A stretch of 64,000 bases of DNA, taken from NCBI GenBank assembly GCA_973895155.1, contig OZ316898.1:1304751-1368750 (forward strand), written 5' to 3'. The translations under genes and the position numbers were made by a program. Source of the stretch: Marsupella aquatica (Eukaryota; Plantae; Marchantiophyta). Under the pieces are notes generated by a model. The model was not told the DNA's origin and did not search any database. It worked only from the letters and a program-made list of their open reading frames with translations. Position 1 is the first letter of the stretch. The number at the start of each line of letters is the position of its first letter. This document shows, piece by piece, positions 9,113-38,720 of the stretch.

Positions 9113-12100
9113 CTATGTACGATTGTACCTACTGGTGTATCCATCCTCCTTATCCTCTTGTCGTTTCTTCATCCTGCAAATTGATCACCATTACAGATAG
9201 GCAGAACCTTAGCTCCTGAAAATTTCCACAATCTCAAGACCCAATAATTTGTAGGAGTTGTTTGACATAATTGCTTGTAGATCATATACTTCACTGTCAG
9301 ACAACAATCACTTGTCTGCATTTGATCGATGAAACTAACCTGGCATTTCGTTCCTCTCTGGCGTCCAGAGCTATTGCTTCTTTATCACTTAGAATTTCAA
9401 TGTGGGGTTCAAAAAGGTCCCACTCATTTCTCCTCCTGCCCATTTTGACGCATGATAAGCATTGGCACGGCCAGAAGCGCAAGACAGGCAGATGATAGGT
9501 CCACATGGTACATCCAAGCCCGAGCGTAAATGACGATACTTTAGATAGCAAGACTTCAATACCTGACTATGCTGATCTTGCTGTTTGGGCGTCTCATCAG
9601 GTTTACAGCAAATGTACCCACAGCGCTACATAAAGAAACAACATAGATATCAACAACTGGAATGCAAGCCTAACCCATAGAAGATGTATTTTCAATTGGG
9701 AGGTCCGGAAATAGTATCAGTGACTGATGTACACAAATCATCACTGTACAAATGAGCTGCACAAAAGGAGTAAATAACATCGGGAGTGAGAAGACCCTGC
9801 AGAAACACTGAAAACAAACCTTGTTGTTGGGATGAAGTCTGATCCCCTGTCCCGCCTTGCTTTCTTGCTAATCCTGGTTTCTCGCCCGGAAGCAATATTC
9901 TGCTTAGCTATCTGTAGGACCGAACACAAACTAAGCAATGATGCATATTGAAAAAGAAAAACGAAACAATGAATCACACTCAATCGTCCAATCTCGCTCA
10001 CTACAGCTGCTGATCTCAGGACACTTATCAAGCAACAAATTTGCTGTAGAGAAATACCTCGTAAAGTTGTTCTCGAATTGAGATCGCAATGGCGGGCTGT
10101 TAAGAAGCAATAGATCACCGTTAGCCCACTTCCTCAAAGCTACTACCTGTCCCAGATACAGTGAACAGTGATCAACGGAGGCAAGTTATTGGAGAGTTGT
10201 GGATGACATGTATGATTAGATGATTGTGATTTAAGAACAATGTATTCTTTCAAAAGATTGTATTCCTCATATCATTCCTTCGACTCAGTTGGTACCATTC
10301 AAGCAAGGGTCTCATTTTTCCACTCATCGTCCAAACCCTCAAGACAATTAGAGTGCGCTATAAACAGCTCCGAGATTAAGCCCTGTTATGGCATACACAA
10401 ATGGCTCGACAGAAATTCACTTGCCTCTGCGATCAGTGGGGGACAAGGCGAAGTGCAGACGTGCTATTTTAGGCCAACCTACTTATTAGATAGAGCGTGC
10501 ACTAACTCATTACAATCAACTAGGAAGATAAGTATCTTATACTTACTGCAACTTCGGCATCTTCTAGCTCAAGGTCCTTACACAGTCCTCTGGCAAATCC
10601 CTCTGGATCGCTGTTAAAATTGTTCACATCCTGCACAGGGTACCTGTAATAGTTAGAAAGCAAACGGAACCTCATCCAATCTAATGAAGGGTCAGCTAAT
10701 GTGACCGTGGATGATGGATGCAGTCCTTCATGGAGGAAGGAAATAAGACACTTTCATGCGCTTAGTGTCCGGCTACCACACACGAGGACCGAAAGAAACG
10801 GAATCAAAGCACAGTTTCGAAATGTACTCAAACAGACTTTCAATCAAGCCTCATAACCCACCCAGAGGAATTGATCGTGAATGACTGTGTTGTTGACTCT
10901 CAAGTCCAACTGCCAAAATCCACAATAGAAAATTACTAATCCAGAAAAACTTGCGAAATATCAGTGACCATCCGCTTGTCACAAACACCTTCCGAGCAAT
11001 AGGGCATGCTTCATTGAAACACTTTCCTTACATCGCACCAATCCAACGTCAATTTGTTTGAGAATTGTTATCCACAGATAGGTGATGTGTCAAGAAAGCT
11101 GATCAAGTCTAAAAGTGGCCTCTTAGTCTAGATTCAAGATATGCTTGGCGAGGCAAATGCGAGGGACGAGACTTGGAGAACTATCGACCATTATATTGGC
11201 CAACACGACCTTTGCTTACCCTCAATGTTTGGACTCGTTCTTCAGTGCTCATCTCTTGCGATTCGAAAGAACGGAACTCAGCTATTTGGGTCTGCAAAAG
11301 ACCGACCACCAAGGAGATATCGTCATTCAGCGTTCATCCGCGGGTATGGCAGCTCGATCTCCTCATCAGGCATCAGAGTTGATTACACTTATCAAATTCA
11401 CAGGCTCAAGAAACAGAACCTAAACTCTCCTCAACTGGATATGACAAGTGTTGACAAACGCAAAGCACTTCAAAATAGACATTGTAATTGTCGCATTCAG
11501 TGAGTCTCATCGATGAAACTGTTTAACAATAGTTACTTGCAAATTAAGTTCTCATCGCTCGGGCTGATTTTGATCGAAAGGCAAAAAGGGACTCAAAAAT
11601 CAATCACCGGGGTCCGAAATGACCTGCATGGCTTGCCCGATAATTGGAGTGAACCCAGCGGGAAGATTTAAGTCTTTCGTCATTCGCCTAACGAAAGGAA
11701 AGACTTCAGTGTCTGGGTCTGCAGAGAAAGCCGATCATCGAGTTTAAGAGAATCTTTTTCTACTCTCAAAAGAATTTGTCATAATCTAAGCACTGACCAA
11801 TAACATCAGCTACAAGTCTCGATAACAGCCAGGACGTCAAACAGGACAGACAAATGTACGTTGAAGAAGTAAGATAGGAGGCGCAAAGCCATCCTGGTGA
11901 ATAAAACTACCCGCCTACCATCAGCGTTCCATGTAAATGCATCCTTCAGCCTACGGTTCTCGAACTCAACGTCTATTCGCATTGGAATCAAGTTTTCTGC
12001 AGAAGGCCTGAGAGCAAAGCACCCAGCTCGTCAAGTTCATGAATATACATGGAATAAAAACGATGAACTCAATTCAACTCAAAACCTTAAAAACTTTGAT

Positions 12101-12565: not shown

Positions 12566-13759
12566 GTCTTCCTCCCGTGCTACCGTCCTCTACAGCAATT
12601 TCGACGCAAACATGTCGAGACTAGAGTAGTAGCGGAACGAAAACCCACATCTCTCTGTCAGTATGTACAGTACCTCGACGGTGCAAGCATTCAACGAAAT
12701 CCACAAATTTCGCAACATTGCTCTCAATCCTTACGGAAAAATACGGGTGCTAAAGTCGAATAGTGGTGACCAGGAGGAGGGTACAGTTCGTCAGTGTGGA
12801 CGACTAAACCCCGGTTCGCGGTTTGCAAAAACCAATGCAGCTCAACCTGGGGTTCCCCTCACACAAATGCTATTCGGTACCACTATCTCCACACTTTAAT
12901 ATGCAATCTGGCCAATTCTCTTCCATACAAAACATAGAAGCGTGGCAACTTGGGTATTCACTATATGAGATTGTTTTGTAATAAGGAGTTTTCCCTAAAG
13001 TTCTGCCTCTCTTGCTTGCGGTGGTTAAATTTCTGGTTTAGCTTCCTTTCTTTGGTTGGTTTCCAGCTCACCCAGTTTTTGGCTGCATGACCTTTGGTCC
13101 TCTGGGGTGCTGACCCCCTTTTGTGGGCCACCCCTGTTATATGTTGGCTTTTCGAATGTAATTCAATTGATTTTTCCTAGGCAAAAAACAGAGTTTCTCC
13201 TGAAAGCATCCCATGAAAAGATGGGCTACTCACCTTGTAACTTTAAATATGGGTTACCTTAAAAATAGAGCATGAAGCCCAGATAGACATGGCTGTGTCT
13301 AGGTCTCAAATGTTGGATTGACTCCTCATTTTCTGTGGGGTTCACAGATTTTCCCTTAAAATTAAAAAAAAATTAGAGCATGAAAATAAGTTTTAGTCAA
13401 AAGTCAGGGGAATGTAACAAAATGATTCAAGGGCAGCAACATCTCGCCCCTCACATGGTCCATGGTGAGGCTCCTTTGCACTATTGCCACTTCTGCTTTG
13501 CTTGACGTCACCCTGCTGCAAGGATTGATACTGCTGCCGGACCTTGCCTTGATGCTCAATGTCTTTGGATGTGAATGCCAACAAGAAAGAGGGTGACCTA
13601 GGTTTGCCACCCTCCAAGTTCATTTTGGCTTTTTTGCCTTGTATTTCACTCTCATATAGCTATATGGTGAACCCACCTTTCAGATTTTGTCTTATTCAAA
13701 GTTTTGGTGTCATATATTTTTATTTCAATGTGCCTTATCAAGGGGCAGCCTGTGTATAA

Positions 13760-15505
13760 TATACATTTTTATCTAATTTATGGACCCCTTTAATTTTAAG
13801 ATTCTAGAGTATTTTGAACTTATTTTGGCAGCCCCCTTATAAATTTTGATGTTTGTGATCTATCAGAGATGAAGGAATGGCTCCACCACTTCAACAAAAT
13901 ATTCTCATGAGTGAGAGAAATGGTTCTGATTGTGTCCTAAGTTCCCCTTATGTCTTTCTTTCCTAAGTGTATGGTTTTTATTGAAATGAGTGTCAGTCTT
14001 TCTTTCCTAAGTGTATGGTTTTTATTGAAATGAGTGTCATTCATGAGGACATTGAATTAAGTGCAGACATAGTAGCATCCTTGATTGTACTTTTCATTGG
14101 TCACTGTGCACCAATCCTTCTAGTTAAATGTTCTCATATTTTATTTACTTTCAAATCACTACAAGACAAAAACTCAAACATGTTCCAGGATGAGCATGCT
14201 ATATCACACAGTGGAATAGCAAAACCGGCTGTTGACCTTGTGAACTCACTCGGTAATAGTCCATTTATGGAAAACTCTACTAGATTTGCCAAAAACTCAC
14301 CCTACACCTTGCCACCACACAGGTGCACCCTTGCTTGGGAGGGGGAGGAGAGAAAGGGGTGAGAGAGGGCAAAAAGAGGAAAAAAACAAAAATAAAACAT
14401 CTCTATTCCTCCTAGGAGACCGCAACTGGACACCAAGAGGCTCTTAGTCCCCCATTTTATTCATCTGCATTTCTTTGTCTCATCTCAATAGCTTCTTTGC
14501 AACTCAAAGACATTAGGTTAATAAACTGTCAAACTATTCCAATGCTCATGGAGGGTGACGGTTGTGGTAAATGATTTTGTTCTTATTATATTGATGGTGC
14601 GGCCCACTGCCATGTATTTGTTGCAAAAGCTATAGATGAGCAAAAGGCAAGCAATCTACATGAGAGAGGTTGGTGGGAGGGGGGGGGGGGGGGGGGGGGG
14701 GTTGGCACTTGGCTGTGCCTGGATCCACAAGGTGTGGCAGCTGGGCATTGGGTGCATTTGTATCTGTGAGGGTGAATGGATTGCATGTGAAGGCAGTGGC
14801 AGGGCTCATAGAGTGGCCAATTGAGGTCATTTTTGAAAACTTTAGTCACAATAAAATGGGCAGTGGAATCCTAGAGCCTGGGTTAATTTGTTGAACCCGC
14901 CCAAATATATGTCATTTGAGAAGGAGTCTCTGAGATGAGGAGAACAGATGGATCTTTTATCAAATTTTGAAGCTGCTATATGGTGAATCCAACTTTCACA
15001 TTTTGTCTTATTGAGATTTTGTGTCAAGTATTTTGATTTTAATGTGCCTTAAGAAAGTGAATCATTTGTATTAATTTTTAACTTTTGTACCCCTTTTAAT
15101 TTTAGTGAATTCATAGTATTTTGAAAGTATTTAGTGAATTCTCTTTTCTCTAATGAAAGGGAGAGAAATGAGTTTGAACAATGTGCACATCTAGTGTACT
15201 AAGTTCCCCTAGTGATCTCCTTTACAAAATTTATGGTTTTAAATGAGTTAACTGTCATTACTTAGAAGGAAGTGAAAATTTGTACTGTATGTGCACAACT
15301 CTTTAGTACTTTCTTGGTCATAATATGTTTTTTTTTGCATGTGTATTTTATGGTTTTGTGTGTTATGGCACTCACTCTTAATTAAGAGATATTAATTTCT
15401 TGGCATATACTTTATATGTACCTAGTTACCTACTTATTTTATCATAAAATTACATATCACTACAAGACAAAAAAAGACATGTTCCAAGATGAACATGCTA
15501 TACTA
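13760..15505. repeat. Degenerate ~450-bp direct duplication (about 13760-14205 and 15040-15505), probably an old non-autonomous element
   Basis: Shared blocks include CTAAGTTCCCCT, TATGGTTTT..ATGAGT and ATCACTACAAGACAAAAA...ACATGTTCCA.GATGA.CATGCTATA (near 14155 and 15456). There is also an exact 44-bp tandem duplication at about 13952-14039 and a poly-G run at about 14678-14701. Confidence 0.55.
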
Positions 15506-23148: not shown

Positions 23149-24879
23149 GCTGGGCACTCGAGAGTGAGCTCAACTCTTACCGACATGGGTTTGAGCTTTT
23201 CGGACATTTATATGTCAAGAGGCTCACCATGCTTAACGGTAACATATATTGAGTTCTAACTTGGAGAGTTCTCTCTCATCTTAGCTATAAACATTTTTAG
23301 GTTTCATAATACACCCCTTTTTTTGAGGAGGGGATTATACAAAACACCATAAATTTAGTAAAAGTAAAGATTAAATATAATTTTACCATACAAAAAATAA
23401 TTAAATTTAGTCAAGCTCTCAAGATGATAACCAAATTTTATATGGTGATACTAACAAAATATCTATGAATAGAATCTAATATAACTAAAGAACATATATT
23501 TTTGGCCAATTCCATAACAACCATTTCTTGGATGACCCTTTAAATTGAATTTTCTATTTCAAGGATTGATTTTTTCTTGTTTGTTACCGAAAAGTCACTC
23601 AAGTTTTTACGTACATTAATGTCCTAGTTACGGGCATTATGAAAATAATGCACTCAAAACTTGGGCTAGTTCCCTCATTTTTCAGGGCATTATATCCCAC
23701 AATGCCCTCTAACCAGGACATTATCCTATTCTGAAAGAGCCACTGAACGAAGAGACAAGGTGCTATTTGAAAATGATAACTTTTGTGTTTACACAATCAC
23801 TCTGTGGGTTATTGGCCATATTCCCCTGAGTATATCCTGATAACTGGTATCAGGACATGAATACAATCAAAGGACTAAGGTATTTCATATTTCTGCTTTG
23901 GTAAACGCAGGTGAGAAGTTGCATAGGGAGCCCATCCTGTAATGAGCCATCCTAACATTAACGTGCATTATCATTCTACTATAATTTGCAATTCCACCAA
24001 AACTTTTCATAACTCTTGATAGTCTACTCACAAACTTGAAAGTAGGGAACAACATCTAGCCATCAAATGTATCCCATAATTTTTTGTTAGGACTGTGTGC
24101 ATTGGGGTGCCCAATGACGGTCCTAACGAGGGTCTATTATCTCGGGAGGAGAGCTATATTGAAGAAGGTGGGATAAGTGGTACATGTGCAAATTATACCA
24201 TACATGTATGTCAGATATGAGAGTATAGTATAATATACCCTGGGTGTATTTTACTACATAGGAAGCATGCATGTACATATGAAGCATGGGGTGGGAGGTT
24301 TATGATGTGGAAAAGGTTTACATTTTATTTTGATTTTTTGGTCACTATTTTTCCATGCCATTTTTTATTTGTGTTGGAGGGATGAGGGTGGTGTTGTCTT
24401 GTTTTTTGGTTTCCTGTCAAATTCAGGGTCCAAGGTGAATTCGTTGCCCACCCCTCCCACCTGTCATGTTTTTTCTGGAGGTGGACAATTGTGGGCTGGT
24501 GCACAGGGAATTGTTGTTGCATGTGGTTCAATCTGACTTGCACAATTCTTCGTTTTGGCCCTTATTTCATCTTTGTTTCCCATTTAATTTCTTTGCATTG
24601 CCCAACATATTCCTTGTTTGCATGGAGTTTTCTGTATTGCTCTGGCAGTAGAATTTGTTGCCTTCCTTATGGGATGAATTTTCCTTGCAGCCCATTGGCA
24701 TCTAAGCATTCCACATTGACAGTACCTTGCACCCAATTTAGGTGGAGGTGTGGGAGTGGATTGGTCTGGAGAACTGCGGGGAAAGAGAAATAACAAGAGG
24801 GGCCCACTGTACACCCCCTTTTTGCCTGCACCTTGTGCCCATCTGTCGCCTGCACCTTGTGTAGTCTGCCTTCCCTTGT

Positions 24880-24904
24880 ATCACCCTATTAATTAAAACT
24901 GGAA
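24880..24904 (+). repeat. Left terminal inverted repeat
   Basis: 22/25 match to the reverse complement of 37840-37864; preceded by TSD TTGT. Confidence 0.82.
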
Positions 24905-24944
24905 TTTCTCTAGTCCAGAAGTTGACCTTCAAATTTCTTATTTT

Positions 24945-25045
24945 ACCCCCAAAAGTTCTATAACTTGTTCCCCAAAAGCATACATTTTAGTGGCCAAATA
25001 TACACTTTTTGAGGTCTAAAATTACAATTCTAATGCCCAAATTAT
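24945..25045 (+). repeat. Left subterminal repeats (CCCAAA(T/A)-core, ~22-bp period)
   Basis: cccccaaaagttcta / ccccaaaagcataca / gccaaatataca / tctaaaattaca / gcccaaatta at 21-24-bp spacing. Confidence 0.6.
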
Positions 25046-25589
25046 TAATTAAATAATTCAGTTATCAATTATTAATACTTATTAATTAAAAGACATTAAA
25101 GTGTTCTTATTATATACAATATAAACAATGAAAAAATAGAATAAGACAATATAATAAATTGAAATGACCCTGATAACCAAGTTACACAAAGTAACACGGA
25201 AGGTAAACGGACCGGTGATGTATTATAAAAGTAAAAAACCTATTTTTACAGGGTCGAGACCACGTCTGCCCCAATGCAGGCTCTAGATGGTTTTGACCGG
25301 TTGTTGAATGTATATCAATTACTATGTAAAAATCTATGTCAAGATTATCTCGACCCAAATGTAGGGTCCACATAATTTTGACCCGTTGTTGAATCTATAT
25401 CTCTAGCTATTCCCTTTGTAGAGGGTCTAGACCCAAATAACCTTTTTCTGAGAACATATCTACAAGTAAATGAGGATCAACAGCATCTAGACTCAAATGG
25501 ATACTACGCATAGCTTCACTCTTTTTTCGAGTAAGAATATGTATATGTACAACTCACATCGTAACTGTTCAGTGTAGGGTCGAGATAAT

Positions 25590-26864
25590 CTAGACCCAAA
25601 TCTCATGCTCCTCCACCCCGCAGAATTCATTTGAGCAAGTAAACCTAGACCCTGACGGGTCATATTTCATATCGCGATTACAGAAATTGAGAGGCTTTCT
25701 ATTCCAGAACTTTGTTGTGAGGTCCCTACACCTCAAGACTTCCAAAACAAATCCCCGATGATTGTCTCTTTAGGGTCCTGTGTACTGATATCCAATTAAT
25801 GTCTTTGCAAGGTCGTTGATCGCCTCCTCCGTCAATTCCTCCATTGGTGGTAATTGTTGCACTTCATTTTTGATATCCCAGGGAATTTCGTCCGCTGTAA
25901 CATCCAAGACTGTATGGATAACATTGGGAACCCATACCATACTACCCCACCTCTCCGACAACAGAGCATAAATGGCAGCCTGTTGATCCCTGTCCGATAA
26001 AACATTGATCATAGACCACTTTGGATGATTGATAAAAAGATAGTGCTGAAGATTGAAGGCATGATACAATTTCCTGAGCAGAGGCCACAGTATTTCTGGA
26101 AAGAATGTATCATCCATGGAGTGATGCGAAAATGAGGAAGGAAACAACCCACAATTCTCTGGATTTGCAAACGCCTTCATTGGAGTGTCATCAAGAAGGA
26201 GTGTATTAGTTTCGTCGTATAATCCACCATAACATTTCCAAACAACCCTCAAATCCTTCAAAAGAATATTTGCCTTTCCATCGGTAATGTCAGGCCTCTG
26301 GATTCCAGTATCGAATGTATCTTCTTGAGTGAGAATAAACTTGAATTGCTCTCTCTCTTCTTGATTGAAGATCAAATGAATCATTTCATCCGTCCTGGGT
26401 TTCCTTGCACAAGTCCAAATGGCAACATCAAATAATGAAAAAGCTGCGATTAAGAACTCGTGAAGATGGGGTCGCTCAACATACATAAAGTTAAACCCTC
26501 CACGTCTCCCCCAGTGGACACCATTGACACTTGTCGCACTACGGCGCGGTCCGGAACTTGGCGTTTTGACAGAATCCCAGCACATTTTGTTGAGGTCAAG
26601 AATCAATAGCTTCCGTCTGATCGGACCGTGAAGTGGAGGCAAGGGTCCTGCAAAGTACGAACACCAACATTAGAATTGTGGGAGATAAAACAAAGGAATG
26701 CTCGAGACGATCTCGAGCATCACAAGTGAATGAACAACAGTCAACATCATACCTGTTGTTTGTGGAAGGTCAGTAGTTGAAGAAATCTCAGGACATCTTC
26801 GGAGATTATTGTCGACGCACTCCACAATTGGTAAGGGCCCGCCTATTTCTGTGAAGGTAGACAT
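25590..26864 (-). pseudogene. Transposon cargo: FCP1/SCP/NIF-family HAD phosphatase-like protein; exons 26864-26753 and 26647-25590, with a premature TAA at 25770-25772
   Basis: Motifs KLLILDLNK, RPHLHEFL..FDVAIWT, LLKDLRVVW and TNTLLLDDTPMKAFANP. A phase-1 GT-AG intron at 26752-26648 joins the exons in frame. The frame continues about 60 codons past the stop (FCNRDMK...TCSNEFC...WV*). Confidence 0.75.
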
Positions 26865-27101
26865 AATAATTTAGACGGCTGAATTTCCGGACAGTTCAAA
26901 CTAACTTGGGTTTCAACCTCACGTGCTGAAAGACCCAAATTCATCTAGAAGGTTATCTCCTAGTTGGTTTTGGATGTCCAAATTTATCCCTCCGGGAAGG
27001 GTCTCAACAAGAGCTGGCTCAGACCAAACTGGCACTAATTTAAACTTATCCATCCTATACTTTCTAGATCGAATAATCTTCTCAGACTACTCTATAGAGA
27101 C

Positions 27102-30100
27102 TTATTGACCTTTTGACGGTCCATTAGTCCAAACATAATGAGTAGCACTTGCTTTGAGTGATTTGTAACCAGTTCTACCGATTTCAGTCCCCAGTTTCCA
27201 AAAAAAAGGGAGAATTACGGGGCTTCCAGTAGAAGAATCTGTGAAAACAAGCTTATTCTCTGAAGCGCAAAACATTTGGTCCAAGGGAGAGGACGATGCA
27301 CCTGCCTCGTCCTGAGGGGGAGTATGGAAGCCACTAGCTTTCTTAGTAGAGAAAATCTCATCCAGTTGAGGAGGGCTTGGAATTGGTTGGCTAACTGCAT
27401 CCTGCAGGGTGGATTCCCAACCAACATCCAAGGTTGAAGACTGTTGTTCACGTTGTGCATCCCCAAGGCCACCCGATGAAGGAACACTTGGAACATCGAG
27501 ATCATCTCGAGCATCATTTCCAAATTCAGGGAGTATTTCACCCTCCTCTTCCATGTAGCTTGTAATTTTCGGGCCCTCCGTTTTGCGATGCTCTAAATTC
27601 TCCGCAAATACTTTCTCATAAACACTGGCTTCCACTGGAGCTATGTCTGCGGCCGCCTCTTCTATAAGAACGAGGGGACCAGCAGTAATTTCCTCAGATG
27701 GTAACGGCTCCTTGGGTGGCACATATAAAACTTGCTTGTTGTCATGAAGGAGCTGAGCAAAGGCTTCAGTGAATTCCATCTCTTGAGCTGTGTTCGAATA
27801 CACAAAACAATCCCGACCAAGAATGACACAAGCTTTCAATGTCTGTCCTCCAGAGAAGAAATCCAACACTGTATGACCTGGGCACGAGAAATAATCAACA
27901 AGACGCTTTGTCATTCGCAAAGGCTTTGCTCTCGGATTTACAAAGCCACCACGCCGACCGACCATCTCATAAGATGGGGCCATCTTCTCCAAAACATCGA
28001 CATCAACAGTGGATTCATCGAGCTTCTCTTTCCCCTTTGATTGGTCTTTGTTGTTCCCAGTAGGGGCCTTCAAAGGCAAGACTGTGAAGTCTTTGTCCCA
28101 CTTCTCACTGTAGTTCCAGAACGCATAAAAGTCATCAAAGAAAATTTGGGACCAGTCTGGTTCCTCTTCACAACAAATTCCCCCAAAGATGATTGAGTCT
28201 CGAGCTCCAATGAGAAAATCTCCCTCCTCCTTGGGCACCTGATCACGGTAGTAGCTCCCGTACTCCAGCTTCGTGTGCACTTTCTTCTCACGACGAATCT
28301 TTTCAAAGGCACTCTGAATCTGGCCTATCAATGGGCCTTGACGGACAAAAAAGATTACTAAGACCTCCGTTGAGTTCGCCATCTGCAAGCAATACTCCAG
28401 CAAGACAAAAATTTTGGCATCTGTCCACTGCCGTTGTCGAATACGACCAAAATCGACAATGGAGAGTGGACACGTCCTTTGCACCGAGTCAACAACCTCA
28501 GGCTTCATTGTCCTCATCAAATTATCACTAAAAAATGTGCGATAAGGAGTATCCTCCATTGAAGGCAATCCGCCAAATACCTTGCAATATATCTGCTCAA
28601 GCCTCACAATGAGACTTTGCGGAAATGGGTCTTTTGGCCTATTTCTTTTTAGGAGGTTGGAAATCCAAACCTCTCCAGCAAGTTGTCTAAGTTTGGGCAA
28701 CTCACCACGATCCATAAATGCAGGCAACAATTGAGTTAGCTCAAACCAAGTGAGTGAATTGGTAAACCGATCCGGATACTTCAAAACGAAGTACTCCACA
28801 ATTTTACCCTCAGCTTGGTCATGACTTTGAAAGTATGAGCCATATCACTCATTGATTGAATATCAGATTTGTTGGCTTGGTCTTTCTTCAATAAAACCTT
28901 CTGTTGTTGAACGGCAGTAAAAACTTTCAGAATGTCGTCATTACTCAGGTCTCCTTCAAAGCATCTAAACAATGCTGGCGTAATCATTTTTGTTGTCCGG
29001 GCTTTCCCGTTTATTTTTGAACCTAACTCCCCTAGACCATCCGGAAGAAGTCCCTTGACCCAATCGATGCACATTTGTCTCCAAGTTCGGAAGAGGTTCT
29101 CATCCGAAAACAACAACCAAAAAATATTCCTCAGATCGGATTTTCCAGTCGTTATTTTGGCAAGGGCCATAAAATCTTGGTCCAAACAGTACAAAACAAA
29201 TCTGAGGCTCGAGACGATCTCGAGGTAGAATTAAGGAACTATGGTAAAATTTATGGGGAATACATGAAGATAAATCAAATACAGAAACTTGACCTCGAGG
29301 CTCGAGACAATCTCGAGCTCGAAGTGGATTTGAGTTCAAATATACCTGGAACTTTTGATGATCCGTTAGTCTATTGGACCCAATCACGGGTCTCTCCGGA
29401 CGGCCACACTCGTCAAACTGTCGACGCGCATGGACCATAGTATCAAGAAAATAGGACTCATACTCCATTGTCTTATTAACAGCATTTGCCCTTTGTGAGT
29501 GTTGAGCAAGTATTGTCCTTGGAGTTCTGTCCGAAAGAATTCGTGACTTTCGATATTGCAGACTCTTCGCGACCTCCTTCAACTTTGCATCGCTCTTAGC
29601 CCAATCTATGATCCAAACAGCTGCTTTTGCCGAGTGTTGTCCACTGATTGCAAGGAACTGCACCTTCTTATTCTTAACACCCCACTCAAACTCCTTTCGA
29701 TCCTCAGCAGTATTCTCATAATGGAGCAACTGCAAACTCTCTCTTGAATACGGAATTAAATCCGCCACAGCTGGTACCATTCCAGGGTTTCTAACCATGG
29801 ATTTTGCGACCTCCATGGCATGGTCTTTATTGAACATCCTATAAACCAAAACTGCAGATGGCGAATCTATACTGGTGACAGGAATGTCAAAAGTTTCATT
29901 CATGCCAAATGTGTAATACTCCTCAATCTCCTTAAGAACTTCGGCTCCTTCCTTAACGCTCTTTTCTCCCGGAGCATCTCCTGGAGTGCCATCATCATCG
30001 GTATGTGCATTCACACCCGAGGAAGATGCCGGAATGAGATCTACCTTGGGCGATGCGGACTTTTTTGGAGGATGAGCCTTCTTCGATTTGATTTCGGGTT

Positions 30101-30875
30101 TGTCAACCCTCTTCCTCTTTTGAGACACCTTCGCTTCCTTTTTGTCCGAACCGGAGGTCTTGTCTCCTGCAGCTACGGATTTCACTTTACCTGTTTGTCT
30201 CCGATGAGACAACACCCACTTTTTACAAGCATCCTAGTCAAATTCTCCGGCTCCAAACACAAAATCAGGGGATATAGATTCAAACTCCCCCAATTTGGAT
30301 TCCAACATTAGTCTCAAAACCTTCCACGTGAAAGGAGTCGTGAATGCATCATCGCGATCAAGCCCATACTTCCGACAATAAAGGAATCCAAAAATTATGT
30401 CCACTCCAGATATAGGAGTATCTTCTAGCAAATTACTTGTAGTAAAACCCTCGGGGAAGAAACCCATTGATATCACGCTCAGTTGTTTCCTGGCTGCACG
30501 TTCAATGTTAAGATCGCAAGAGTAGTTTTTGGCGTGAAGTCTAATTAGAGCCCACTTCCCTGTTTCGTGGTTCTCCACCGTCAAAACCATGTCCTTACCG
30601 TTACTCGTCACAATAGAAACAACAGGCCCTAGAAGGCTGCACACCAGAGGATCGACTGATGGAGACCTCGTCTTCACACAAATAATAGTTCCTTCCATGT
30701 CTTCAGTTTCAGCAAGCTCAATGGCCCAACAGAATCTAAATAAACTCTGTCCAGGGCAGGAAATCTCAATTGCATGTTCATCTTCGACTACCAAATTAGG
30801 CGATCCCAATTTCGCACCTGGTACAGCAAAAATGTAGCAATTGTCAGGAACATGTACTACAAAACCAAGAAACAA
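27102..30875 (-). pseudogene. Transposon cargo: ~1200-aa multi-domain protein (unknown N-terminus, basic linker, ParB/Srx-like domain, helical region, permuted N6A/N4C DNA-methyltransferase-like domain, acidic tail), disrupted
   Basis: ORFs 30875-30234 and 30215-29100 share a frame, separated by one TAG. The ParB-like segment reads FDIPVTSI...YRMFNKDHAMEVAKSM...FLAISGQHSAKAA. An intron runs from 29345 to about 29177 and a 1-nt frameshift lies near 28800. The MTase-like C-terminal motif is NPRAKPLRMTKRLVDYFSCPGHTVLDFFSGGQTLKACVILGR. Confidence 0.65.
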
Positions 30876-32029
30876 ATAGGTGGCTCGAGATGATCTCGAT
30901 CTTCAGTTTACTATTCAGACATGTTCCAATGCCATTTCATCCGTGGAATTTAAAAAGAGATTTCAAACCCAAGAATCCCAGGAAACACAATAGGCTCGAG
31001 ATGATCTCGAGCCATCATCTGTTTAAAAGAAAAAGATAAGGGCTCGAGATGATCTCGATCCACATATATATCAGTTGAGGCTTTATTCCAACTGGTCCAA
31101 AAGGCAAGCTTGGATCACATTGAAAAGGATATTAGTAATTGAAGTAGACAACAAGGAGTCCTTCCAACTAGAAGAAATTGGCCAAGGGAAACGAATGAAC
31201 ATAAGGGAAGACGGTGTGGGATATATTCGGCTCGAGACAATCTCGAGCCTAACATATCAAATGAGTGATCTGAATATCATATTCAACAATTAACATCATA
31301 TTCAATCAACGATAAAAAATCCACTTTCTCCATTAACTTCTGATACCCACAAACCCGTTCGGATGTCAATGATCAGAACGAGTTGGAGGGCACAGAAGTC
31401 CCTGGAGGAAGGAAATTTTAGATATTTTGGATATGATGTTCAATTTTGAAGGGTAAGGGTTTCCAACTTGAAGAAATCTCACTAGGTCACATGCAGGAAT
31501 TGCATATTGGCTCGAGACGATCTCGAGCCTCATGCCACTTACATCAAATGCAAAATCAATTAATAGATCACAACTTTTGAAACAAAGTATTGGAGAAAAC
31601 ATCAATAGGCTCGAGATGATCTCAAGCCTCAACGGCATCCAAGGAATCCAAAAACAAGTGGACCAATTGAAGCTCGAGACAATCTCGAGTTAAACCTGAA
31701 CAGAACAAAGATGAAGAATTACGTTTAATGGTGCGATGGATCTGATGTGCTGAGTCTAGATGGGTCTGGAGCTCTTCACCAACGGTTGCAAGGTTGTACT
31801 CAGCGAAGTCCTCCTTGGAGAAATCTACAACAGTCGACATGGCTGGTGATGAGAGGAACGTACTACGGGCTGAGAACTTAAAAAAAATCTCGAGCCTAAA
31901 AAGAAAATCTCGACCCTATCGAAGCTCGAGCCTAAACACAAGATCTTGACCCTATAAAATCTCGAGGAAAAAACCTAATCTCGATCCTCTGCAATCTCGA
32001 GGCTAATAGAAGGATCTCGAGGCAAGAGC

Positions 32030-32470
32030 GCGAAACGATCTAGAGGCAAGGAGGCAAGGGACGCGAGGAGGCGAAGAGGCAAAGAGGCGAGGAGGCAAAT
32101 GTGAAAATGGGGAATTCAAAACCCCTGAAGCCACTATAAGCCCCTCGGGGGTCGGCCTTGGCCGTGCCAAGCGTGCCAGGGCTCGTGCAGGCTCAGGCAG
32201 GCTGCCACGCAACCTACTGGGTGCGTACAGTCATTATTACGGTCACACGTGTTGTCATTATTGTTATTCGTATTTCAGCCCTGCCGCAAGTTTAGCCGTG
32301 ACACAAGTTCAACCATTCCGTCTTATTGCCCTTTTTGTCTGTCAGGGTTTTATATATTGCTTCTCCTTGCTCTTCAGCGGGTCATTCTTCTCATTTCATT
32401 TCACCGCTCGCTCGTTTCTTCCTCTACCTCTCTGCTCTCTCTCCCTCTCCCTCTCCCTCTCTCTGGCTCT
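32030..32470. promoter_or_regulatory. Putative bidirectional promoter of the transposon (cargo on -, transposase on +)
   Basis: On the - strand a TATA-like CTTATAG (about 32134-32140) is followed by a CT-rich leader (32045-32100). On the + strand TTTTATATA (about 32348-32356) is followed by a CT-rich leader (32420-32465). A GC-rich core lies between them. Confidence 0.5.
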
Positions 32471-32993
32471 AGATTTGTGCTCTGATCACTTTCTGTTGTT
32501 CTTTTCAAGGGTTTTGGAGTGTACGTTTGTGTTTAGGATATTTCGAGAAATTGTCATTTTAAGCCCCGAAGGAGGTCTAAAATAATTGAGCTCCTATCTT
32601 TTAGAAAACCGAACCTTTTCAGCTTATACTAATGTCGGTCAAAATCCATTTGGAAGCCTTTTCCCTCTATTTGATGGCCTTTTAGAAGCTTTTTCTCAGT
32701 GTCTGGAAGTAAACTGGGAGCCTACTTTCTTAATTGCACCAAATCATTCCTCTAGATCATCTAGAGCCATTTATATGTTCTTATTTTGGGTGGCTTATTA
32801 TTCCTAATAGTTTCTTTGTCAAATACAATGTCCTTTTTGGCTCGAGATCATCTCGAGTCATAAGTTTGGTCCTCAAACTTATTCACTTTCCCCTTCTTTC
32901 TAATGGTGCATTTGGTTTTCCTTCTTATAATAAATGTTTTTAGAGTGTCGGAGGTATAGAATCTTAGTTCGATATTCAGTGAGATTCATATTT

Positions 32994-33222
32994 TACCTCG
33001 AGATCGTCTCGAGCTAAATACTTCTGAATTTTTACATATTGGTGTTTTTGGTCCCTTTTCTACCTCGAGATCATCTCGAGCTAAATACTTCTGAATTTTT
33101 ACATATTGGTTGTTTTGGTCCCTCTTCTACCTCGAGATCGTCTCGAGCTAAATACTTCTGAATTTTGACGTATTGGTGTTTTTGTCCCTCTTCTACCTCG
33201 AGATCGTCTCGAGGTAGAAGAG
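32994..33222 (+). repeat. ~67-bp tandem repeat (3+ units), each carrying one palindrome; ends in a 35-bp hairpin at 33188-33222
   Basis: Unit TACCTCGAGATC(G/A)TCTCGAGCTAAATACTTCTGAATTTTTACATATTGGTGTTTTTGGTCCC...TTC. The last copy extends to CTCTTCTACCTCGAGA-TCG-TCTCGAGGTAGAAGAG. Confidence 0.92.
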
Positions 33223-33345
33223 CTTCTTATTTTCTCTATCACACAATTTTGTGGGATAAACTTCTACACTTGGGTTTTTGTAGTCACTTTACCTCGAGAT
33301 CATCTCGAGGTAACTACATCCAACGGTTTGGGCCACGTTTTCAAA

Positions 33346-36300
33346 ATGGGGAGTTTCTCTCGAGGGGACAAGGTGTGCCTCGTAATCGACGGAGTGGAAG
33401 TTGCTTGTGGGACGGTCCTCAAGGTTGACCCGGGTGACTCAATGCGTAATGTTGATTTGGGAAGTAATCGTATAGGAGTTCTCATTGAGAAGTGCTATGA
33501 GGGATCACGGGAAATTCCTTACCCTTTGCCGCCGATCAGGACCCTGTTTGATGTTGTCAACTCTTGCATTATTTGGGATGCCTCTTTTGCATATTTGAAG
33601 TCACAGTCAACTCCAACGACAACGAAAATGGATGCCTCCTGTTCTACAAAGGATACGGTTCCGGGTTTTGTACCAGAGAAATCGTCGGTGGAAAGTTTTG
33701 GAGACTCGATTGTATCTGGCGATGAAGTCGAGGTCTGGATCGGCAATCAGATTGTGGCTCGTGGATTTGTGTTCAAGACGAATCCCGATGAGACATGTCA
33801 CAATGAAAGACTTGGCACTTCTAGGATTAGTGTGAAAATATGTGAAGTTTTTCAAGGAAGGGAGAGGTTACCCTTTCCTCACAATGGAGCCGATACCGTT
33901 CAGGAAGCATTGGATACTTTTGTATTGTGGAATTTAAAGGATGTTACTCGGAGGAGTTCTTCCCGGGATATGCTAAACAACCTGTCCAGACAGGATGTTT
34001 TTTCAAATTATAATTTCAAGGATTATAGTTTGCGTTCTAATTGGATGACCGAGGAGGTGGAATTGTATGCTGAGGATAATCGGACCAAAGTGGGGGTTGG
34101 CATCATCACAGTTCCTTTCGAGTCAGGTGCAATTGATGATGATGTTCTTGGACCAGATCACATTGGGGTTGCTGTCACACGCGTGATTGACCCTCTATTT
34201 TTCCCAAATATCTCCCCAGGAGTGCCTGGTCTTGTTAGGTGGGCCGTCCGTTCACTTTTGCTGATATCAAGGGGTATTTTTCTTCTGGATCTCATTGAAG
34301 AGGTTTCTCCGAAACCAATTATTGATGGTCGAGATCATCTAGAGGTAGATATGAAAGGTGACACTGAGTTTTTGAAGCGCCCGTATAATTTCATCAAGAG
34401 AACGAAGGTCAACCCAGATGAAAAAAGGAAGAAGCACTTGGAGTCTCGGGCGATACTGAAAATCACAGAGGAGGAAATCGACTCCATCCAAAGAGAAGGT
34501 TGTTGTAAGTTGAAGTGTTGCCTCAGCATGCCGAGAGAAGACCTACAGGAGATAAGGAGAGAATACCATGGGATGTCAAGTGACAACAAAACCAGTCACA
34601 TTCTCACTCTTTTTGGCTGTAGGGAGAAGGAAGTGGAGACAAAAGGATATTTTGTTGTAAGAAGTAGACTTGTTTGCAAGGGTGCATTTAGTAAAATGCA
34701 TGGATTCAGCACTGCCAAGTATTATGATTACAAAAATCAATATGAAGCAGGTTGCACGGTTGGATTCCACGGAAACAAGGGTTCACACAAGACACGGGGA
34801 AGCACCTTGCATGCTTGTGCTTTGTTGGAGTCCATTCTAACCCAAAACGGAGAACCCATGCCACATCTTCCCTATGGAGGGTCTCACGGGACTGACACGG
34901 TTGAGTACAGACTTCCATCTTGTTTCACGAAGAAAGAGATTTTTGAGGAGGTATACTCAAAAATGGAATTAGATGGCTACGTGAAGGTGAGTGAAAACAC
35001 TATGTATAAACTCTGGAGTGAGTCCTTCATGAATTTTGACTTTCACAAGGGAAGTGCATTTGCAAAGTGTACACTTTGCACTGAGTTCAAAGATCAGTTG
35101 ATGCGGGAGAAGAGAAAGAAAGAGCGTTTAGAGATTGAGGAAAGAAGAGCTCGCCATCTTCGTGAGCAAATGTCTAGGAGATATGTTTACTATGCTCATA
35201 GGGTTCTTGCGAAGAAGGATCCTGAGAACTATCTTTGCATTATACATGACAAGATGGACCAGGCCAAGACATGGATCCCTAGGTTGGTCCCCACTCCTAA
35301 ATCATTGTCTGGTAGTGGTCAACCGCTCCCCATTGCGCTCACTGGGATGTTGACCCATGGAAGGGATCCCGGAGTGTATGCTCACTTCAGTTTTACTGGG
35401 CTTTGGCCAGGAGATGCAGACTTCACAGTGACATCATTGACCAAGTGCCTTAGAGATCTGGAGGATTACAAGGGGGACAAATCTGGAGACCTCCTTGAAG
35501 GATTATATTGGGCTGCAACGAGGCCAATTTTTCAATCTCTTTTGGACTTTGAAGCATTTCTCGCAGGTTACTTAGAACCCAAAAAAGTCTCAATTGCTAG
35601 ATTTCAAGGAGCTGAAGATGACCAAGACGACTTTGGTGTTGATCCCAAGGCTACGTCTACCTCTTTCAAACCATTGCCAAGGCACCTGACCTTGCAAATG
35701 GATAATTCAGGGAAAGATAACAAAAACCAGTACGTGATGGCATTTTGCAGTGAGCTTGTTAGTAGAGGGGTTTTTGAAACAGTGCAGATGTCGTTTCTCA
35801 TGGTTGGTCACACCCATGAGGATGTCGATGCATTGTTTTCAAAAGTATCCAACCAAGTGAAGTACAAGGAGGTTTCTACCCTCTTGGGGTTGATGGCTGA
35901 GGTTTGGGAGTGTGAAAGCATTCATCCTGTGCCACGGTTGATCCAAGAGGTTGCAGCTTACAAAGAGTTTTTGAAAAATTTCAAGGTAAAAGACATAGAG
36001 GGTCACTCAAAACCAGTGGCATTTCTTTTCTCTATGAGAGATAATGTTCCAATATATCAATACAAAGCACATGTGAAACAACCTTGGTACCCTCCAACCG
36101 GAAGGTCCATTTGGAGAACTGATTCCAGCACCAATGCTCTCATTTTACCAGAAGGTCAACCGTTTGCAAAACCCATCTCCGGGGATGTACGAGGCAAGGT
36201 TGAAGAAATCATCCCATTCCTTAATCGTTACATTGAGTTTTTGAAGAAGAGCTGTAAGGATGAGACCTCTACAGCATATCGTGAGCGGTTTCCTTTGGTG

Positions 36301-37035
36301 AAATATTGGGAGATGGTGGTGCAAGTATTATCTGGGGAGCTTACAATTGAAGGGGAGGCAGAAATACAGTTAGCATTGACATATGAATTCTGGCCAAAAA
36401 CCAACCACGGAACTGGTTACAAGGTTAATAGTACAGGAACCTCTGAACCATTGGGGGAGCCTAGTAGTAGTACACAGAATCCACAAATGGTGGAGCTTCA
36501 GAATGAGTACCTGGAAGAGATGGAGGATCAAGCTGCAACATTTGTTGGTGCTCGACACGAGCGAGAACTTGCACGTTGGATTCCTCTGCAGGACATTCAA
36601 GAGGGTCACTTTGTATTTCTCCGTCCAGAGGATAAATGGGAAAAGAAGAATGGGAAAGAACGTTTCTGGTTGGTGAGAGCTTTGGGTGTTGTGGACCCAA
36701 ACCATGAGGTTCCTTCAGAAGACTTGCAATGCAATGAGAATTCTCCTACTAGTACACGGTATGCTCCTATGTTCCAAGTGCAATGGTGGAGGCCTAAACA
36801 TGTTAAGCATGATGCACCGGATCATATGCGATATTCACGTTGCTTTCAGACCACTAAGACTTGGGAGGTGGATCCTGGGTTTGACAGTGCCACTGAACGT
36901 TGGCAATTTGCTAATTCTGCTATGTATGGATTCAAGTCACGCTCTAGAGAAGAAAATATAATTGATAGAGGTTTGACCATTCCCAAGAATGTTTTGAAAA
37001 CACTCAAAACCTACATGGAAGGGATTGTTGAGTAA
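33346..37035 (+). CDS. DDE transposase, Sola-like (DUF7869-type core), with three N-terminal Tnp1/En-Spm-like repeats and a C-terminal beta-rich module; intact 1229 aa from ATG 33346
   Basis: Cys clusters CCKLKCC and KCTLC...RARH. Catalytic-type motifs IIHDKMDQAK, LQMDNSGKDNKN and SFLMVGHTHEDVDALFS. No stops or frameshifts. Lies between TIRs with a 4-bp TSD. Confidence 0.82.
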   Translation: MGSFSRGDKVCLVIDGVEVACGTVLKVDPGDSMRNVDLGSNRIGVLIEKCYEGSREIPYPLPPIRTLFDVVNSCIIWDASFAYLKSQSTPTTTKMDASCSTKDTVPGFVPEKSSVESFGDSIVSGDEVEVWIGNQIVARGFVFKTNPDETCHNERLGTSRISVKICEVFQGRERLPFPHNGADTVQEALDTFVLWNLKDVTRRSSSRDMLNNLSRQDVFSNYNFKDYSLRSNWMTEEVELYAEDNRTKVGVGIITVPFESGAIDDDVLGPDHIGVAVTRVIDPLFFPNISPGVPGLVRWAVRSLLLISRGIFLLDLIEEVSPKPIIDGRDHLEVDMKGDTEFLKRPYNFIKRTKVNPDEKRKKHLESRAILKITEEEIDSIQREGCCKLKCCLSMPREDLQEIRREYHGMSSDNKTSHILTLFGCREKEVETKGYFVVRSRLVCKGAFSKMHGFSTAKYYDYKNQYEAGCTVGFHGNKGSHKTRGSTLHACALLESILTQNGEPMPHLPYGGSHGTDTVEYRLPSCFTKKEIFEEVYSKMELDGYVKVSENTMYKLWSESFMNFDFHKGSAFAKCTLCTEFKDQLMREKRKKERLEIEERRARHLREQMSRRYVYYAHRVLAKKDPENYLCIIHDKMDQAKTWIPRLVPTPKSLSGSGQPLPIALTGMLTHGRDPGVYAHFSFTGLWPGDADFTVTSLTKCLRDLEDYKGDKSGDLLEGLYWAATRPIFQSLLDFEAFLAGYLEPKKVSIARFQGAEDDQDDFGVDPKATSTSFKPLPRHLTLQMDNSGKDNKNQYVMAFCSELVSRGVFETVQMSFLMVGHTHEDVDALFSKVSNQVKYKEVSTLLGLMAEVWECESIHPVPRLIQEVAAYKEFLKNFKVKDIEGHSKPVAFLFSMRDNVPIYQYKAHVKQPWYPPTGRSIWRTDSSTNALILPEGQPFAKPISGDVRGKVEEIIPFLNRYIEFLKKSCKDETSTAYRERFPLVKYWEMVVQVLSGELTIEGEAEIQLALTYEFWPKTNHGTGYKVNSTGTSEPLGEPSSSTQNPQMVELQNEYLEEMEDQAATFVGARHERELARWIPLQDIQEGHFVFLRPEDKWEKKNGKERFWLVRALGVVDPNHEVPSEDLQCNENSPTSTRYAPMFQVQWWRPKHVKHDAPDHMRYSRCFQTTKTWEVDPGFDSATERWQFANSAMYGFKSRSREENIIDRGLTIPKNVLKTLKTYMEGIVE

Positions 37036-37060
37036 GTCAAATGTTTTTTAGTAGTCACTC

Positions 37061-37583
37061 TGTCAGAGTGAGGGAGTCTAGTATGTCAATTAGTTTGGAA
37101 TTAGACATGTCAGAGTGAGGGAGTCTATGTCAATTAGTTTGGAATCAGACATGTCTTTAGTACTTACTGAGTGTTGGTTAGTACTAAGTACTAGTATATC
37201 TATTTAAGGAACTAATTATTATAATATTTTGGGATACTAGTTTGAATAGGTGGAGGTAATTGGACTTGGATACCTTTATAATTGCTTCAATTAATTATTA
37301 TATCAATACAGACTATATATTACATGAAGTCTTAATATCCATGATAGGATGTGAGTGCCTCTTAGTACTGTCTAGTAAACCTTAGTTTCAACTCGAGTTG
37401 CTTAGAATGTACTAACAAATTACTTGTTTGAATGGATATTTAAACTAAACCCTAAGTAGAAGGTTAATTTAGCTAGCTAAGGGTAGAGATCATATTGAAG
37501 CTTTACTAGTTATATGGGTAGAGATCATATTATTTGAAGCTTTACTAGTTATATGGGTAGAGATCATATTGAAGCTTTACTAG
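37061..37583 (+). repeat. Short tandem duplications in the transposase 3' region
   Basis: TGTCAGAGTGAGGGAGTCTA..TGTCAATTAGTTTGGAAT x2 (37061-37150) and GGGTAGAGATCATATT(ATTT)GAAGCTTTACTAG x3 (37481-37583). Confidence 0.85.
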
Positions 37584-37659
37584 ACACTTATATTCTATTA
37601 GTCAAATTGAATCAATGTAAATAAATTCTACTTCTTATCCAACATATTTTACATTATTA

Positions 37660-37822
37660 TCACCCAAATGTTTTTCTTTAGAATCCAAATTAATATTTCA
37701 TTTTCTCCTATGTACAATCTTGATCCCCCAAATGTACAACATCTGGTGCCCAAATGTACAACTCCCACTGCCCAAATGTACAATTCTTGTGCCCAAATAT
37801 ATATTTTTTGGTGCCTAAATGT
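37660..37822 (+). repeat. Right subterminal repeats ((G/C)CCCAAATGTACAA core, 21-22-bp period)
   Basis: CCCAAATGTACAA x3 plus degenerate copies (CCCAAATATATA, CCTAAATGTCC, CCCAAATGTTT). Confidence 0.8.
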
Positions 37823-37839
37823 CCAAAGATCAAAGAATT

Positions 37840-37864
37840 TTCCAGTTTTAATGAATAGACTGAT
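37840..37864 (-). repeat. Right terminal inverted repeat
   Basis: TTCCAGTTTTAATGAATAGACTGAT followed by TSD TTGT. Confidence 0.82.
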
Positions 37865-38720
37865 TTGTGCCTTGCCCTCGACCACTGCCTCCAGCACATG
37901 GAGACGGGGAGGAGAGAAGGGGAGAGGAGGCAGAAAAAGGGGTAAATGGCATGACCCCGGGACAACCCTGTTTGGACACAATGTAGCTGGCAACCCACCT
38001 TGCACAGTGTTGCCCCTGCACACTTGCCCTCCCAAACAACATCACTTTTATAATAACAGCATTAACCAAATTGATGACATTGCTGCATGGTCAACAACCA
38101 TGCACCCAACCAAAATGACACTTTTGCAACCACATTCATTTGAACATGACTACATAGATGACATGGCTGGAATGACAACACTTTTGCAATAATCATACAA
38201 CCCCAATGACAACCCAATTGAAACTGCAATTGACTTTCATAACCATGACACAATCACAGTGACAGCCATACTAGTAGCACAACATTGTTGCAATGATAAC
38301 TCAGTCTGCAATGCATGGCAGGGAGCTCAAAGTATGCCTTGTCCCACAACACTCTTTTCCTCAATAATTTCCACCAGAACATCTTTTTGCAAAGACATCT
38401 TGAAGGCAATGATATCATTAATGCCTCCTCTCATGCAATGCCACCTTTTACATAATGACCACTTTTACAAGAGATATCCGTAATGGACCTCCAAATGAAA
38501 CTTCCTTACTTAACCAACCAGAACATGCATCTTTTTGTCCAGTGTAAATTGGGACCCATCACAGACCTGTACCATTTCAAGTCACTTAATCTTCTAACGG
38601 AATTTGCAGTCCTTAAAGCACAAGAATGTCACTATAAAATGCAGCATGTTCTACTATTCTTTGGTGTCACCGAATGCGATCGACTACGACCATAGTGTCG
38701 AATGAGCTAATTCATTGACA

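Follow-up and report, generated by a model that had tools for sequence, protein, structure and literature searches.

What is the function of the short palindromes that are repeated throughout a transposon of the liverwort Marsupella aquatica, and which protein recognises them? We analysed a 64-kb stretch of contig OZ316898.1 (assembly GCA_973895155.1), below referred to as the window, in which a single element of 12,985 bp occupies positions 24880-37864. It is a member of a family of cut-and-paste DNA transposons that is present in the liverwort in high copy number. Its transposase gene lies on the + strand and an accessory unit, or cargo, on the - strand, and the two diverge from a shared central spacer. 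The sequence points to the palindromes as self-recognition sites for a ParB-like accessory protein, a reading to which we assign a probability of about 0.5. The sequence observations made in a preliminary description of the locus were confirmed overall. Its interpretation was supported in part: the protein folds, the conserved cargo and the restriction of the sites to the element stood, whereas the claimed novelty and the marking of the element by methylation did not.

Palindromes of the element and its relatives

Copies of the 17-bp palindrome CTCGAGA-N3-TCTCGAG were located with the pattern CTCGAGANNNTCTCGAG, allowing up to two mismatches. The scan returned 20 matches in the 64 kb, compared to an average of 0.16, and at most one, in shuffled sequence. 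Nineteen of these matches (11 of them exact) lie inside the element at 26701-34344, with starts at 26701, 27495, 29208, 29301, 30884, 30995, 31043, 31231, 31511, 31610, 31673, 32750, 32841, 32997, 33064, 33131, 33197, 33293 and 34328. The earlier count of about 20 palindromes within the element therefore stands, but the statement that there are none outside it has to be amended, because one weak match with two mismatches was found at 54466. The CTCGAG hexamer occurs 39 times inside the element and eight times in the 51 kb outside it.

Although coding sequence makes up ~64% of the element, 17 of the 19 sites are non-coding (binomial P ~2e-6 for two or fewer coding sites, by our own arithmetic). 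The sites stay clear of the outer 1.8 kb of the element on the left and of the outer 3.5 kb on the right. Read along the sense strand of the local gene, the 3-nt spacer is T[CT][AG] at all sites but the one at 27495 (18 of 19), and this polarity is reversed across the central spacer. A 67-bp tandem repeat of 3.3 copies, with one palindrome per unit, directly precedes the transposase ATG (32994-33213, + strand). Furthermore, a run of seven to eight direct ATCTCGAG-like half-sites is located just upstream of the cargo leader (31887-32030, + strand). The 17-bp palindromes are lineage-specific cis elements, which are kept in promoter-leader regions and introns and are excluded from coding DNA.

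Relatives of the element were used to compare the cargo and the palindromes across lineages. The cargo region is covered throughout by contigs from four public sequencing runs (three studies, two organism labels), in thousands of pieces that are 90-100% alike. In the liverwort Riccia sorocarpa, a DUF7869 transposase diverges from a ParB-like cargo at five loci (L001, L005, L008, L009 and L010), and the proteins of the Riccia relatives are 22-56% identical to those of the window. Methyltransferase-like pieces were present in L001, L005, L008 and L010. An open reading frame (ORF) with a NIF domain was found in L001 and L005, while L009 and L010 run off the edge of the locus. The cargo genes follow the same order in L004 and L011. 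Because the layout recurs in Riccia sorocarpa and many near-identical contigs cover the cargo region, the cargo is a family-wide component of these elements and not a one-off capture. In one of the sequencing runs (X1), contig depth over the leader and palindrome region on the cargo side (30900-31700) was 10-50 times below that of the coding parts of the cargo, which suggests that related subfamilies share the genes and differ in this non-coding region.

The palindromes of the relatives change in sequence from one lineage to the next. L001, L005 and L008 carry TCGGGAYGCRTCCCGA, with TAGCGA- or TGGCGA-type variants, and L009 carries GCGATGCATCGC. In L010 the palindrome is ~45 bp long (GCTGGCGGAAAAGTAAGGAC...), is built on GGCGGAAAAGTAAGGAC and is present in ~50 copies, while that of L003, CATCGAGATCATCTCGATG, is close to the motif of the window. 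In six lineages (the window, L001, L003, L008, L010 and L011), the intron between the ParB-like exon and exon 3 of the cargo gene contains the palindrome of the lineage concerned. In the window this intron occupies 29180-29342 on the - strand, where alignments to homologues break and resume, and two palindromes lie within it (29208 and 29301). The earlier claim of a spliced cargo is thereby backed for one intron. A palindrome stays in place here while its sequence changes, as would be expected if a cis site and its element-encoded binder evolved together. Being restricted to the element, specific to the lineage and kept at homologous non-coding positions, the palindromes are linked to the elements that carry them and, as judged from these comparisons, they are under selection.

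Two further loci are informative with respect to the cargo. For L006, even profile searches over 10 kb revealed neither ParB-like nor methyltransferase-like sequence, and 18 inverted GCGGAAAAG motifs are present upstream of its transposase, which is 59% identical to the transposase of L010. L007 has neither cargo nor arrays. A first scan (arms of 6 nt, spacers of at most 6 nt) had given the impression that cargo-less elements are without arrays, for L006, L007 and L011. This idea was dropped when L006 and L011 turned out, in a k-mer scan, to contain inverted GCGGAAAAG motifs whose spacers are long.

Several of these motifs are related to each other. The core GGCGGAAAA is common to the inverted motifs of L006 (8586-9867), L010 (450-9920) and L011 (13047-13898), three loci of the Riccia genome that differ in other respects, and the longer GGCGGAAAAGTAAGGAC is common to L006 and L010 despite the limited identity of their transposases. 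L001 has two related 16-bp palindromes, with TAGCGAYGCRTCGCTA in its central spacer (8197-9654) and TCGGGAYGCRTCCCGA at 1942-6148 and 13716-14351. The two have the core GAYGCRTC in common, and at a single hybrid site of L008 an arm of one type is paired with an arm of the other.

Candidate binders of the palindromes

The ParB/Srx-fold domain of the cargo is encoded at 29343-29969 on the - strand and carries the motif FLAISGQHSAKAA. It was modelled with a predicted local distance difference test (pLDDT) score of 80. The model matches M. xanthus ParB (7bnk_B) with a VIA Z of 9.4 and a root-mean-square deviation of 2.4 Å over 95 residues, and the top 29 structures all belong to the ParB/Srx superfamily (ParB, Noc, KorB, PadC, SbnI, SerK or Srx). 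Hence, the ParB-like fold predicted earlier was recovered. Because searches against Pfam, NCBIfam, PADLOC and PDB profiles yielded nothing significant for this domain, its identification as ParB-like follows from the comparison of folds. All members of the family have an invariant SGQHS at the place of the GERRxR motif. Moreover, weak Pfam DndB matches were obtained for 3 of 16 members (best E 0.0048). These sequence features point to the DGQHR/DndB branch of the superfamily. The ParB-like domain is followed by a conserved domain of 120 amino acids (aa) without a detectable relative in profile searches.

Bacterial ParB loads at palindromic parS sites, and fusions of ParB with methyltransferases occur in phages. 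By analogy, the palindromes of the liverwort element would be docking sites of an element-encoded protein, most probably the ParB-like accessory protein, which would bind as a dimer like ParB on parS. The bound protein would allow the family to recognise its own copies and to control their transcription or chromatin, and may act as an anti-silencing or licensing factor. We favour the accessory protein as the binder because ParB-type proteins bind palindromes and because the arrays sit inside the cargo gene.

Several observations weigh against this reading. The arginine motif GERRxR, with which canonical ParB binds cytidine triphosphate, is absent from the whole family, and neither a helix-turn-helix nor any other known DNA-binding domain was identified beside the ParB-like domain. 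The polarity of the spacer at 18 of 19 sites is not expected for the binding site of a symmetric dimer. Although each lineage has its own palindrome, this specificity does not discriminate between cargo and transposase, because the two are passed on as a unit. Finally, the arrays of L006 persist without cargo in cis, and could thus belong to the transposase. L010-type elements may serve L006 in trans; otherwise, its sites would be read by the transposase. The earlier proposal that the cargo protein recognises the palindromes is accordingly in keeping with the private sites at homologous introns, but weakened by the arrays of this cargo-less locus.

The palindromes might instead be bound by the transposase, through three repeats in its N-terminal region, for autoregulation of the bidirectional promoter or assembly of the transposition complex, and the role of the cargo would then be unrelated to them. 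Seven sites of the window fall into the 600 bp that precede the transposase ATG, four of them in the 67-bp tandem array. Moreover, L006 retains dense arrays of inverted motifs directly upstream of its transposase, and the type of palindrome tracks the transposase clades. However, the palindromes are not subterminal, and a different 22-bp repeat fills the right subterminal region. The sites are also conserved inside introns of the cargo gene, and the motif of L006 recurs in the cargo-bearing L010, which makes service in trans possible. On balance, we consider binding by the transposase unlikely.

An action of the palindromes in transcription or at the RNA level appears less likely still. They would then be hairpins in leaders and introns, cruciforms or sites for host factors, which tune expression, splicing or small RNAs. 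This explanation would fit the location of all but two sites in the non-coding parts of the two gene units, the orientation of the spacer along the local gene with its flip at the central spacer, and the very long palindromes of the relatives, which are expected to fold strongly. In contrast, a 7-bp stem with a 3-nt loop forms a weak hairpin, and it is the sequence of the arms itself, not merely their pairing, that is conserved among copies. Different lineages within the single genome of Riccia have different sequences, which argues against a single host factor. It is very improbable that the arrays are neutral by-products, such as slippage-prone palindromic repeats or tiny foldback insertions where selection is weak, since a palindrome is found at the same intron in six lineages despite its differing sequence and since 19 copies compare to 0.16 expected, even though some copies arose by local tandem duplication (the 67-bp array) and coding DNA is avoided as it would be by any neutral insertion.

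The accessory unit and its active sites

The ParB-like and methyltransferase-like motifs quoted in the preliminary description were located in two ORFs of the - strand, at 29100-30215 and 27102-28799, respectively, and the NIF domain in a third, in agreement with a divergent cargo on that strand. The pieces of the cargo were searched singly. The 5' coding block of cargo gene 1 (29343-30839, - strand) encodes a conserved N-terminal domain, a basic linker and the ParB/Srx-fold domain. Homologue P0001 covers both domains and aligns with this block over residues 2-509. The 3' coding block (26922-29179, - strand), delimited by tblastn of homologues P0017, P0021, P0024 and P0128, encodes the exon-3 domain (28806-29179), the methyltransferase-like domain and an acidic tail. 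The N-terminal and exon-3 domains gave no match in Pfam, PADLOC, PDB profiles or the ESM Atlas. The pieces were assigned to one protein because homologues span those that adjoin: in P0024 and P0128, exon 3 links the end of the ParB-like domain with the methyltransferase-like part, and in P0074, a gene model of Riccia, the latter is fused to a NIF domain. In the accessory unit, a single large protein combines the N-terminal domain, the DndB-like ParB/Srx fold, the 120-aa domain and the fold of beta-class methyltransferases, and a NIF/FCP1-like ORF comes after it.

The accessory gene of this particular copy is a pseudogene, with three in-frame stops and one frameshift that were overlooked in the preliminary description. 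One stop interrupts the 5' coding block (30234-30236), and two others (27102-27104 and 27087-27089) precede an otherwise conserved C-terminus. The frameshift is a loss of 1 bp near 28801. Contigs of other copies have an extra T after 28801, which would bring both cargo ORFs into one frame. Any such function would therefore have to come in trans from intact copies. One contig of the Logan collection (L002, from run SRR18067462), which stems from another organism, contains an uninterrupted ORF of 901 aa with exon 3 and the methyltransferase-like part (191-2896). It is followed after ~350 nt by a NIF ORF (3246-4154), and the contig has no palindromes. L002 could be a source of naturally intact accessory protein.

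The methyltransferase-like domain (27720-28556, - strand) was predicted to have the beta-class amino-methyltransferase fold, in an AlphaFold model with a pLDDT of 85.7. The model matches CcrM (6pbd_B) with a VIA Z of 18.0 over 214 aligned residues, and Foldseek retrieved M.BceJIV, CcrM and M.RsrI (E 6e-9, probability 1.00). In addition, the family profile matches M.RsrI at 3.7e-12, and the Pfam PF01555 score of 27.9 bits lies above the cut-off of 26.7. The fold and the permuted order of the motifs are those of the beta-class PF01555 methyltransferases, as had been claimed. Motif I, VLDFFSG-GQ, is conserved and one residue shorter than the canonical DxFxGSG. The position of motif IV is occupied by VDFGR in the window and by VDF[GSA]R in ~20 family members, in place of the canonical (D/N/S)PP(Y/F/W), where the equivalence of position is inferred from the structural model, and a profile comparison with a canonical bacterial methylase aligned the C-terminal half only. 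Because DPPY is replaced by VDF[GSA]R in the whole family, it is doubtful that the element is marked by its own methylation, as the preliminary description had envisaged, and the ParB and phosphatase motifs are non-canonical as well. Of the ideas put forward in that description, this one has the least support. The family is rare. The methyltransferase-like ORF was matched by only 70 of 1.84 billion representative proteins, and all named matches are liverwort proteins. Liverworts also have beta-class enzymes of their own, Marchantia DN4MT1a/b, which keep TSPPY and are active N4-cytosine (N4C) methylases that make N4-methylcytosine (bioRxiv 10.1101/2021.02.12.428880). These host enzymes and the transposon-borne methylase-like family may have a common origin.

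The NIF/FCP1-like ORF, of the HAD type, is located at 25770-26642 on the - strand (Pfam NIF 1.2e-16; NCBIfam HAD-IIID 2.5e-13), and its Pfam match covers profile positions 1-155 of 160. It comes after the methyltransferase-like gene in L001, L002, L004, L005 and L011 as well. No conservation was found in the spacer before this ORF, which would represent either an accessory gene in its own right or the last exon of the cargo gene. Motif I reads ILDLNKM in the window and in L002 and ILD[VI]EG in Riccia, instead of the canonical DxDx(T/V). Hence, the nucleophilic Asp is kept, while the Asp two positions further on is replaced by N or E. The Thr of motif II, the Lys of motif III and the Asp of motif IV are retained. 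All three enzyme-like domains of the unit are thus conserved, each with a non-canonical active site throughout the family. We therefore expect from their sequences that these domains act mainly as binding or scaffold modules, and not as a canonical N6-adenine (N6A) or N4C methylase and a phosphatase of the C-terminal domain (CTD) of RNA polymerase II.

The transposon and its relation to known systems

The element is bounded as had been described. Its terminal inverted repeats (TIRs), with 25-nt arms at 24880-24904 (+ strand) and 37840-37864 (- strand), are complementary at 22 of 25 nt (88%), and the chance expectation for such a pair in the window is ~0.005 by our own arithmetic. The target-site duplication TTGT, read directly at 24876-24879 and 37865-37868, abuts the outer side of both arms. 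A 22-bp TGTACATTTGGGC-like repeat, unrelated to the palindrome, is present in five copies next to the right TIR on its inner side (37710-37825, - strand) and in only one or two weak copies near the left end. The right-hand repeats are candidate transposase-binding subterminal repeats. In the decayed Riccia element L001, TIRs were sought and not found. The GC-rich central spacer between the divergent genes (32000-32480) is a predicted bidirectional promoter region, judging from its sequence. Outside the element, the k-mer scan revealed an unrelated tandem array at 50979-51260 with ~7 units and a period of ~44-49 bp, which contains ACTTGTTGCAAA.

The transposase ORF is intact, in line with the preliminary description. 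It spans 1235 codons on the + strand (33328-37035, first ATG at 33346), matches DUF7869 as its sole Pfam family (2.7e-44) and aligns end to end with a homologue of 1250 aa. The three N-terminal repeats, of ~110 aa each, precede the DUF7869 core, and Pfam PF03017 was detected in the N-terminal region of one Riccia paralogue. Among 15 homologues, conserved residues are D641 (nearly invariant), Q790-x-D792-N, N798-K and G827-H-T-H-E-D-x-D834, which would fit a DDD/E catalytic core. Riccia sorocarpa has more than 20 paralogues of this transposase. More distantly related proteins are found in amphioxus, and the ESM Atlas adds oomycetes and echinoderms. The Sola superfamily is defined by a DDD transposase and 4-bp duplications, and is known from moss (PMC10741241). 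The TIRs of our element are flanked by such a 4-bp duplication. Furthermore, the motif order CCx3C, FxxCxxCxxxK, D-x3-Q was, by eye, the same in the transposases of the window and of Sola1-1_Ec32 of Ectocarpus (supplement of PMC12477816). From the duplication and this reading of the motifs, an assignment as Sola1-like is plausible, but not proven.

The preliminary description had presented the element as a new system. This was not borne out, since the same design and the idea of self-binding have been published for brown and red algae (PMC12477816; 10.1101/2025.02.11.637652). Sola1-1_Ec32 is an element of 21.5 kb with a 4-bp duplication, which encodes a protein of 1104 aa with ParB-like and DNA-methylase parts opposite the transposase, and its authors propose that this accessory protein binds and modifies its own element (PMC12477816). 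Compared by published description, the liverwort element is likewise a TIR transposon with a 4-bp duplication and a gene for a ParB-like and N4C/N6A-type methylase protein on the strand opposite the transposase. In contrast to Sola1-1_Ec32, it resides in a liverwort, measures 13 kb, has a conserved NIF/FCP1-like ORF after the fusion gene and a degenerate catalytic motif in the methylase. Moreover, lineage-private palindromes are dispersed through its introns and leaders, whereas none were described for Ec32.

In the red alga Bostrychia, accessory genes of Plavaka transposons include PAG2, with a PF01555 methylase, and PAG3, with a ParB-like domain; tandem inverted repeats occur beside PAG3, and the cassette moves between transposon superfamilies (10.1101/2025.02.11.637652). 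Accessory methylase and ParB-like domains in a transposable element, inverted-repeat arrays that adjoin the ParB-like gene and an occurrence in several superfamilies are features in common with the liverwort elements. However, the red-algal elements have two separate genes, one in which a 2-oxoglutarate oxygenase is fused to the ParB-like domain and one in which a SET domain is fused to the methylase, and their transposase is of the EnSpm/Plavaka type. Their repeats form tandem arrays beside the gene, whereas the liverwort sites are spread through introns and both leaders.

Bacterial and phage systems (ParB-parS, DndB-like DGQHR proteins and ParB-methylase fusions) resemble the liverwort unit in the ParB/Srx fold (Z 9.4), in multiple palindromes of 16-17 bp and in the fusion to a beta-class methylase. 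They differ from it in that the liverwort protein has SGQHS instead of GERRxR, no identified helix-turn-helix and no methylase motif IV, and is encoded by a eukaryotic gene with introns. In Arabidopsis, VANDAL elements encode VANC proteins, which bind short motifs that are amplified in the non-coding regions of the same elements and thereby escape silencing. These Mutator-like elements and ours have in common an element-encoded accessory protein and short motifs amplified in their own non-coding DNA, with self-recognition specific to the element as the presumed logic. The likeness is confined to the pattern of motifs, and the domains of the liverwort protein are of bacterial type.

Our literature search found no report of such elements for liverworts or other land plants. 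The element represents a land-plant variant of a type of transposon whose first description, from algae, dates from 2025. Its new features are the NIF-like partner, catalytic motifs that have lost their canonical form in the whole family, and dispersed sites that are conserved at introns.

A broader reading combines these features. The ParB-like, pseudo-methylase and pseudo-CTD-phosphatase unit would, together with its private palindromes, form a self-licensing module of a portable kind. Docking on the element's own palindromes in promoter, leaders and introns would be the task of the ParB-like part, while the FCP1-like part, in which the binding residues are kept and the general acid is lost, would hold RNA polymerase II by its CTD. 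As a result, copies of that lineage alone would stay transcribed despite silencing by the host, and this coupling to transcription would be mirrored in the polarity of the spacer on the sense strand. The module would also be passed from one superfamily to another, being of Sola type here and associated with Plavaka, Mutator and Zisupton in red algae. We regard this scenario as a whole as quite unlikely, ranking it between binding of the palindromes by the transposase and their action at the RNA level.

To our knowledge, transposon accessory proteins that recognise their own element have been demonstrated experimentally only for the VANDAL elements of flowering plants. The class with ParB and methylase domains was noticed in algae in 2025, where its function was only predicted, and the liverwort family provides an example from land plants. 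The loss of the catalytic motif in the whole family cautions against the assumption that these proteins methylate DNA, and the CTD-phosphatase-like ORF adds a conserved third partner. The family offers many copies and several diverged lineages in one genome, and the short private palindromes at homologous introns are clear candidate sites, which makes the binding hypothesis directly testable.

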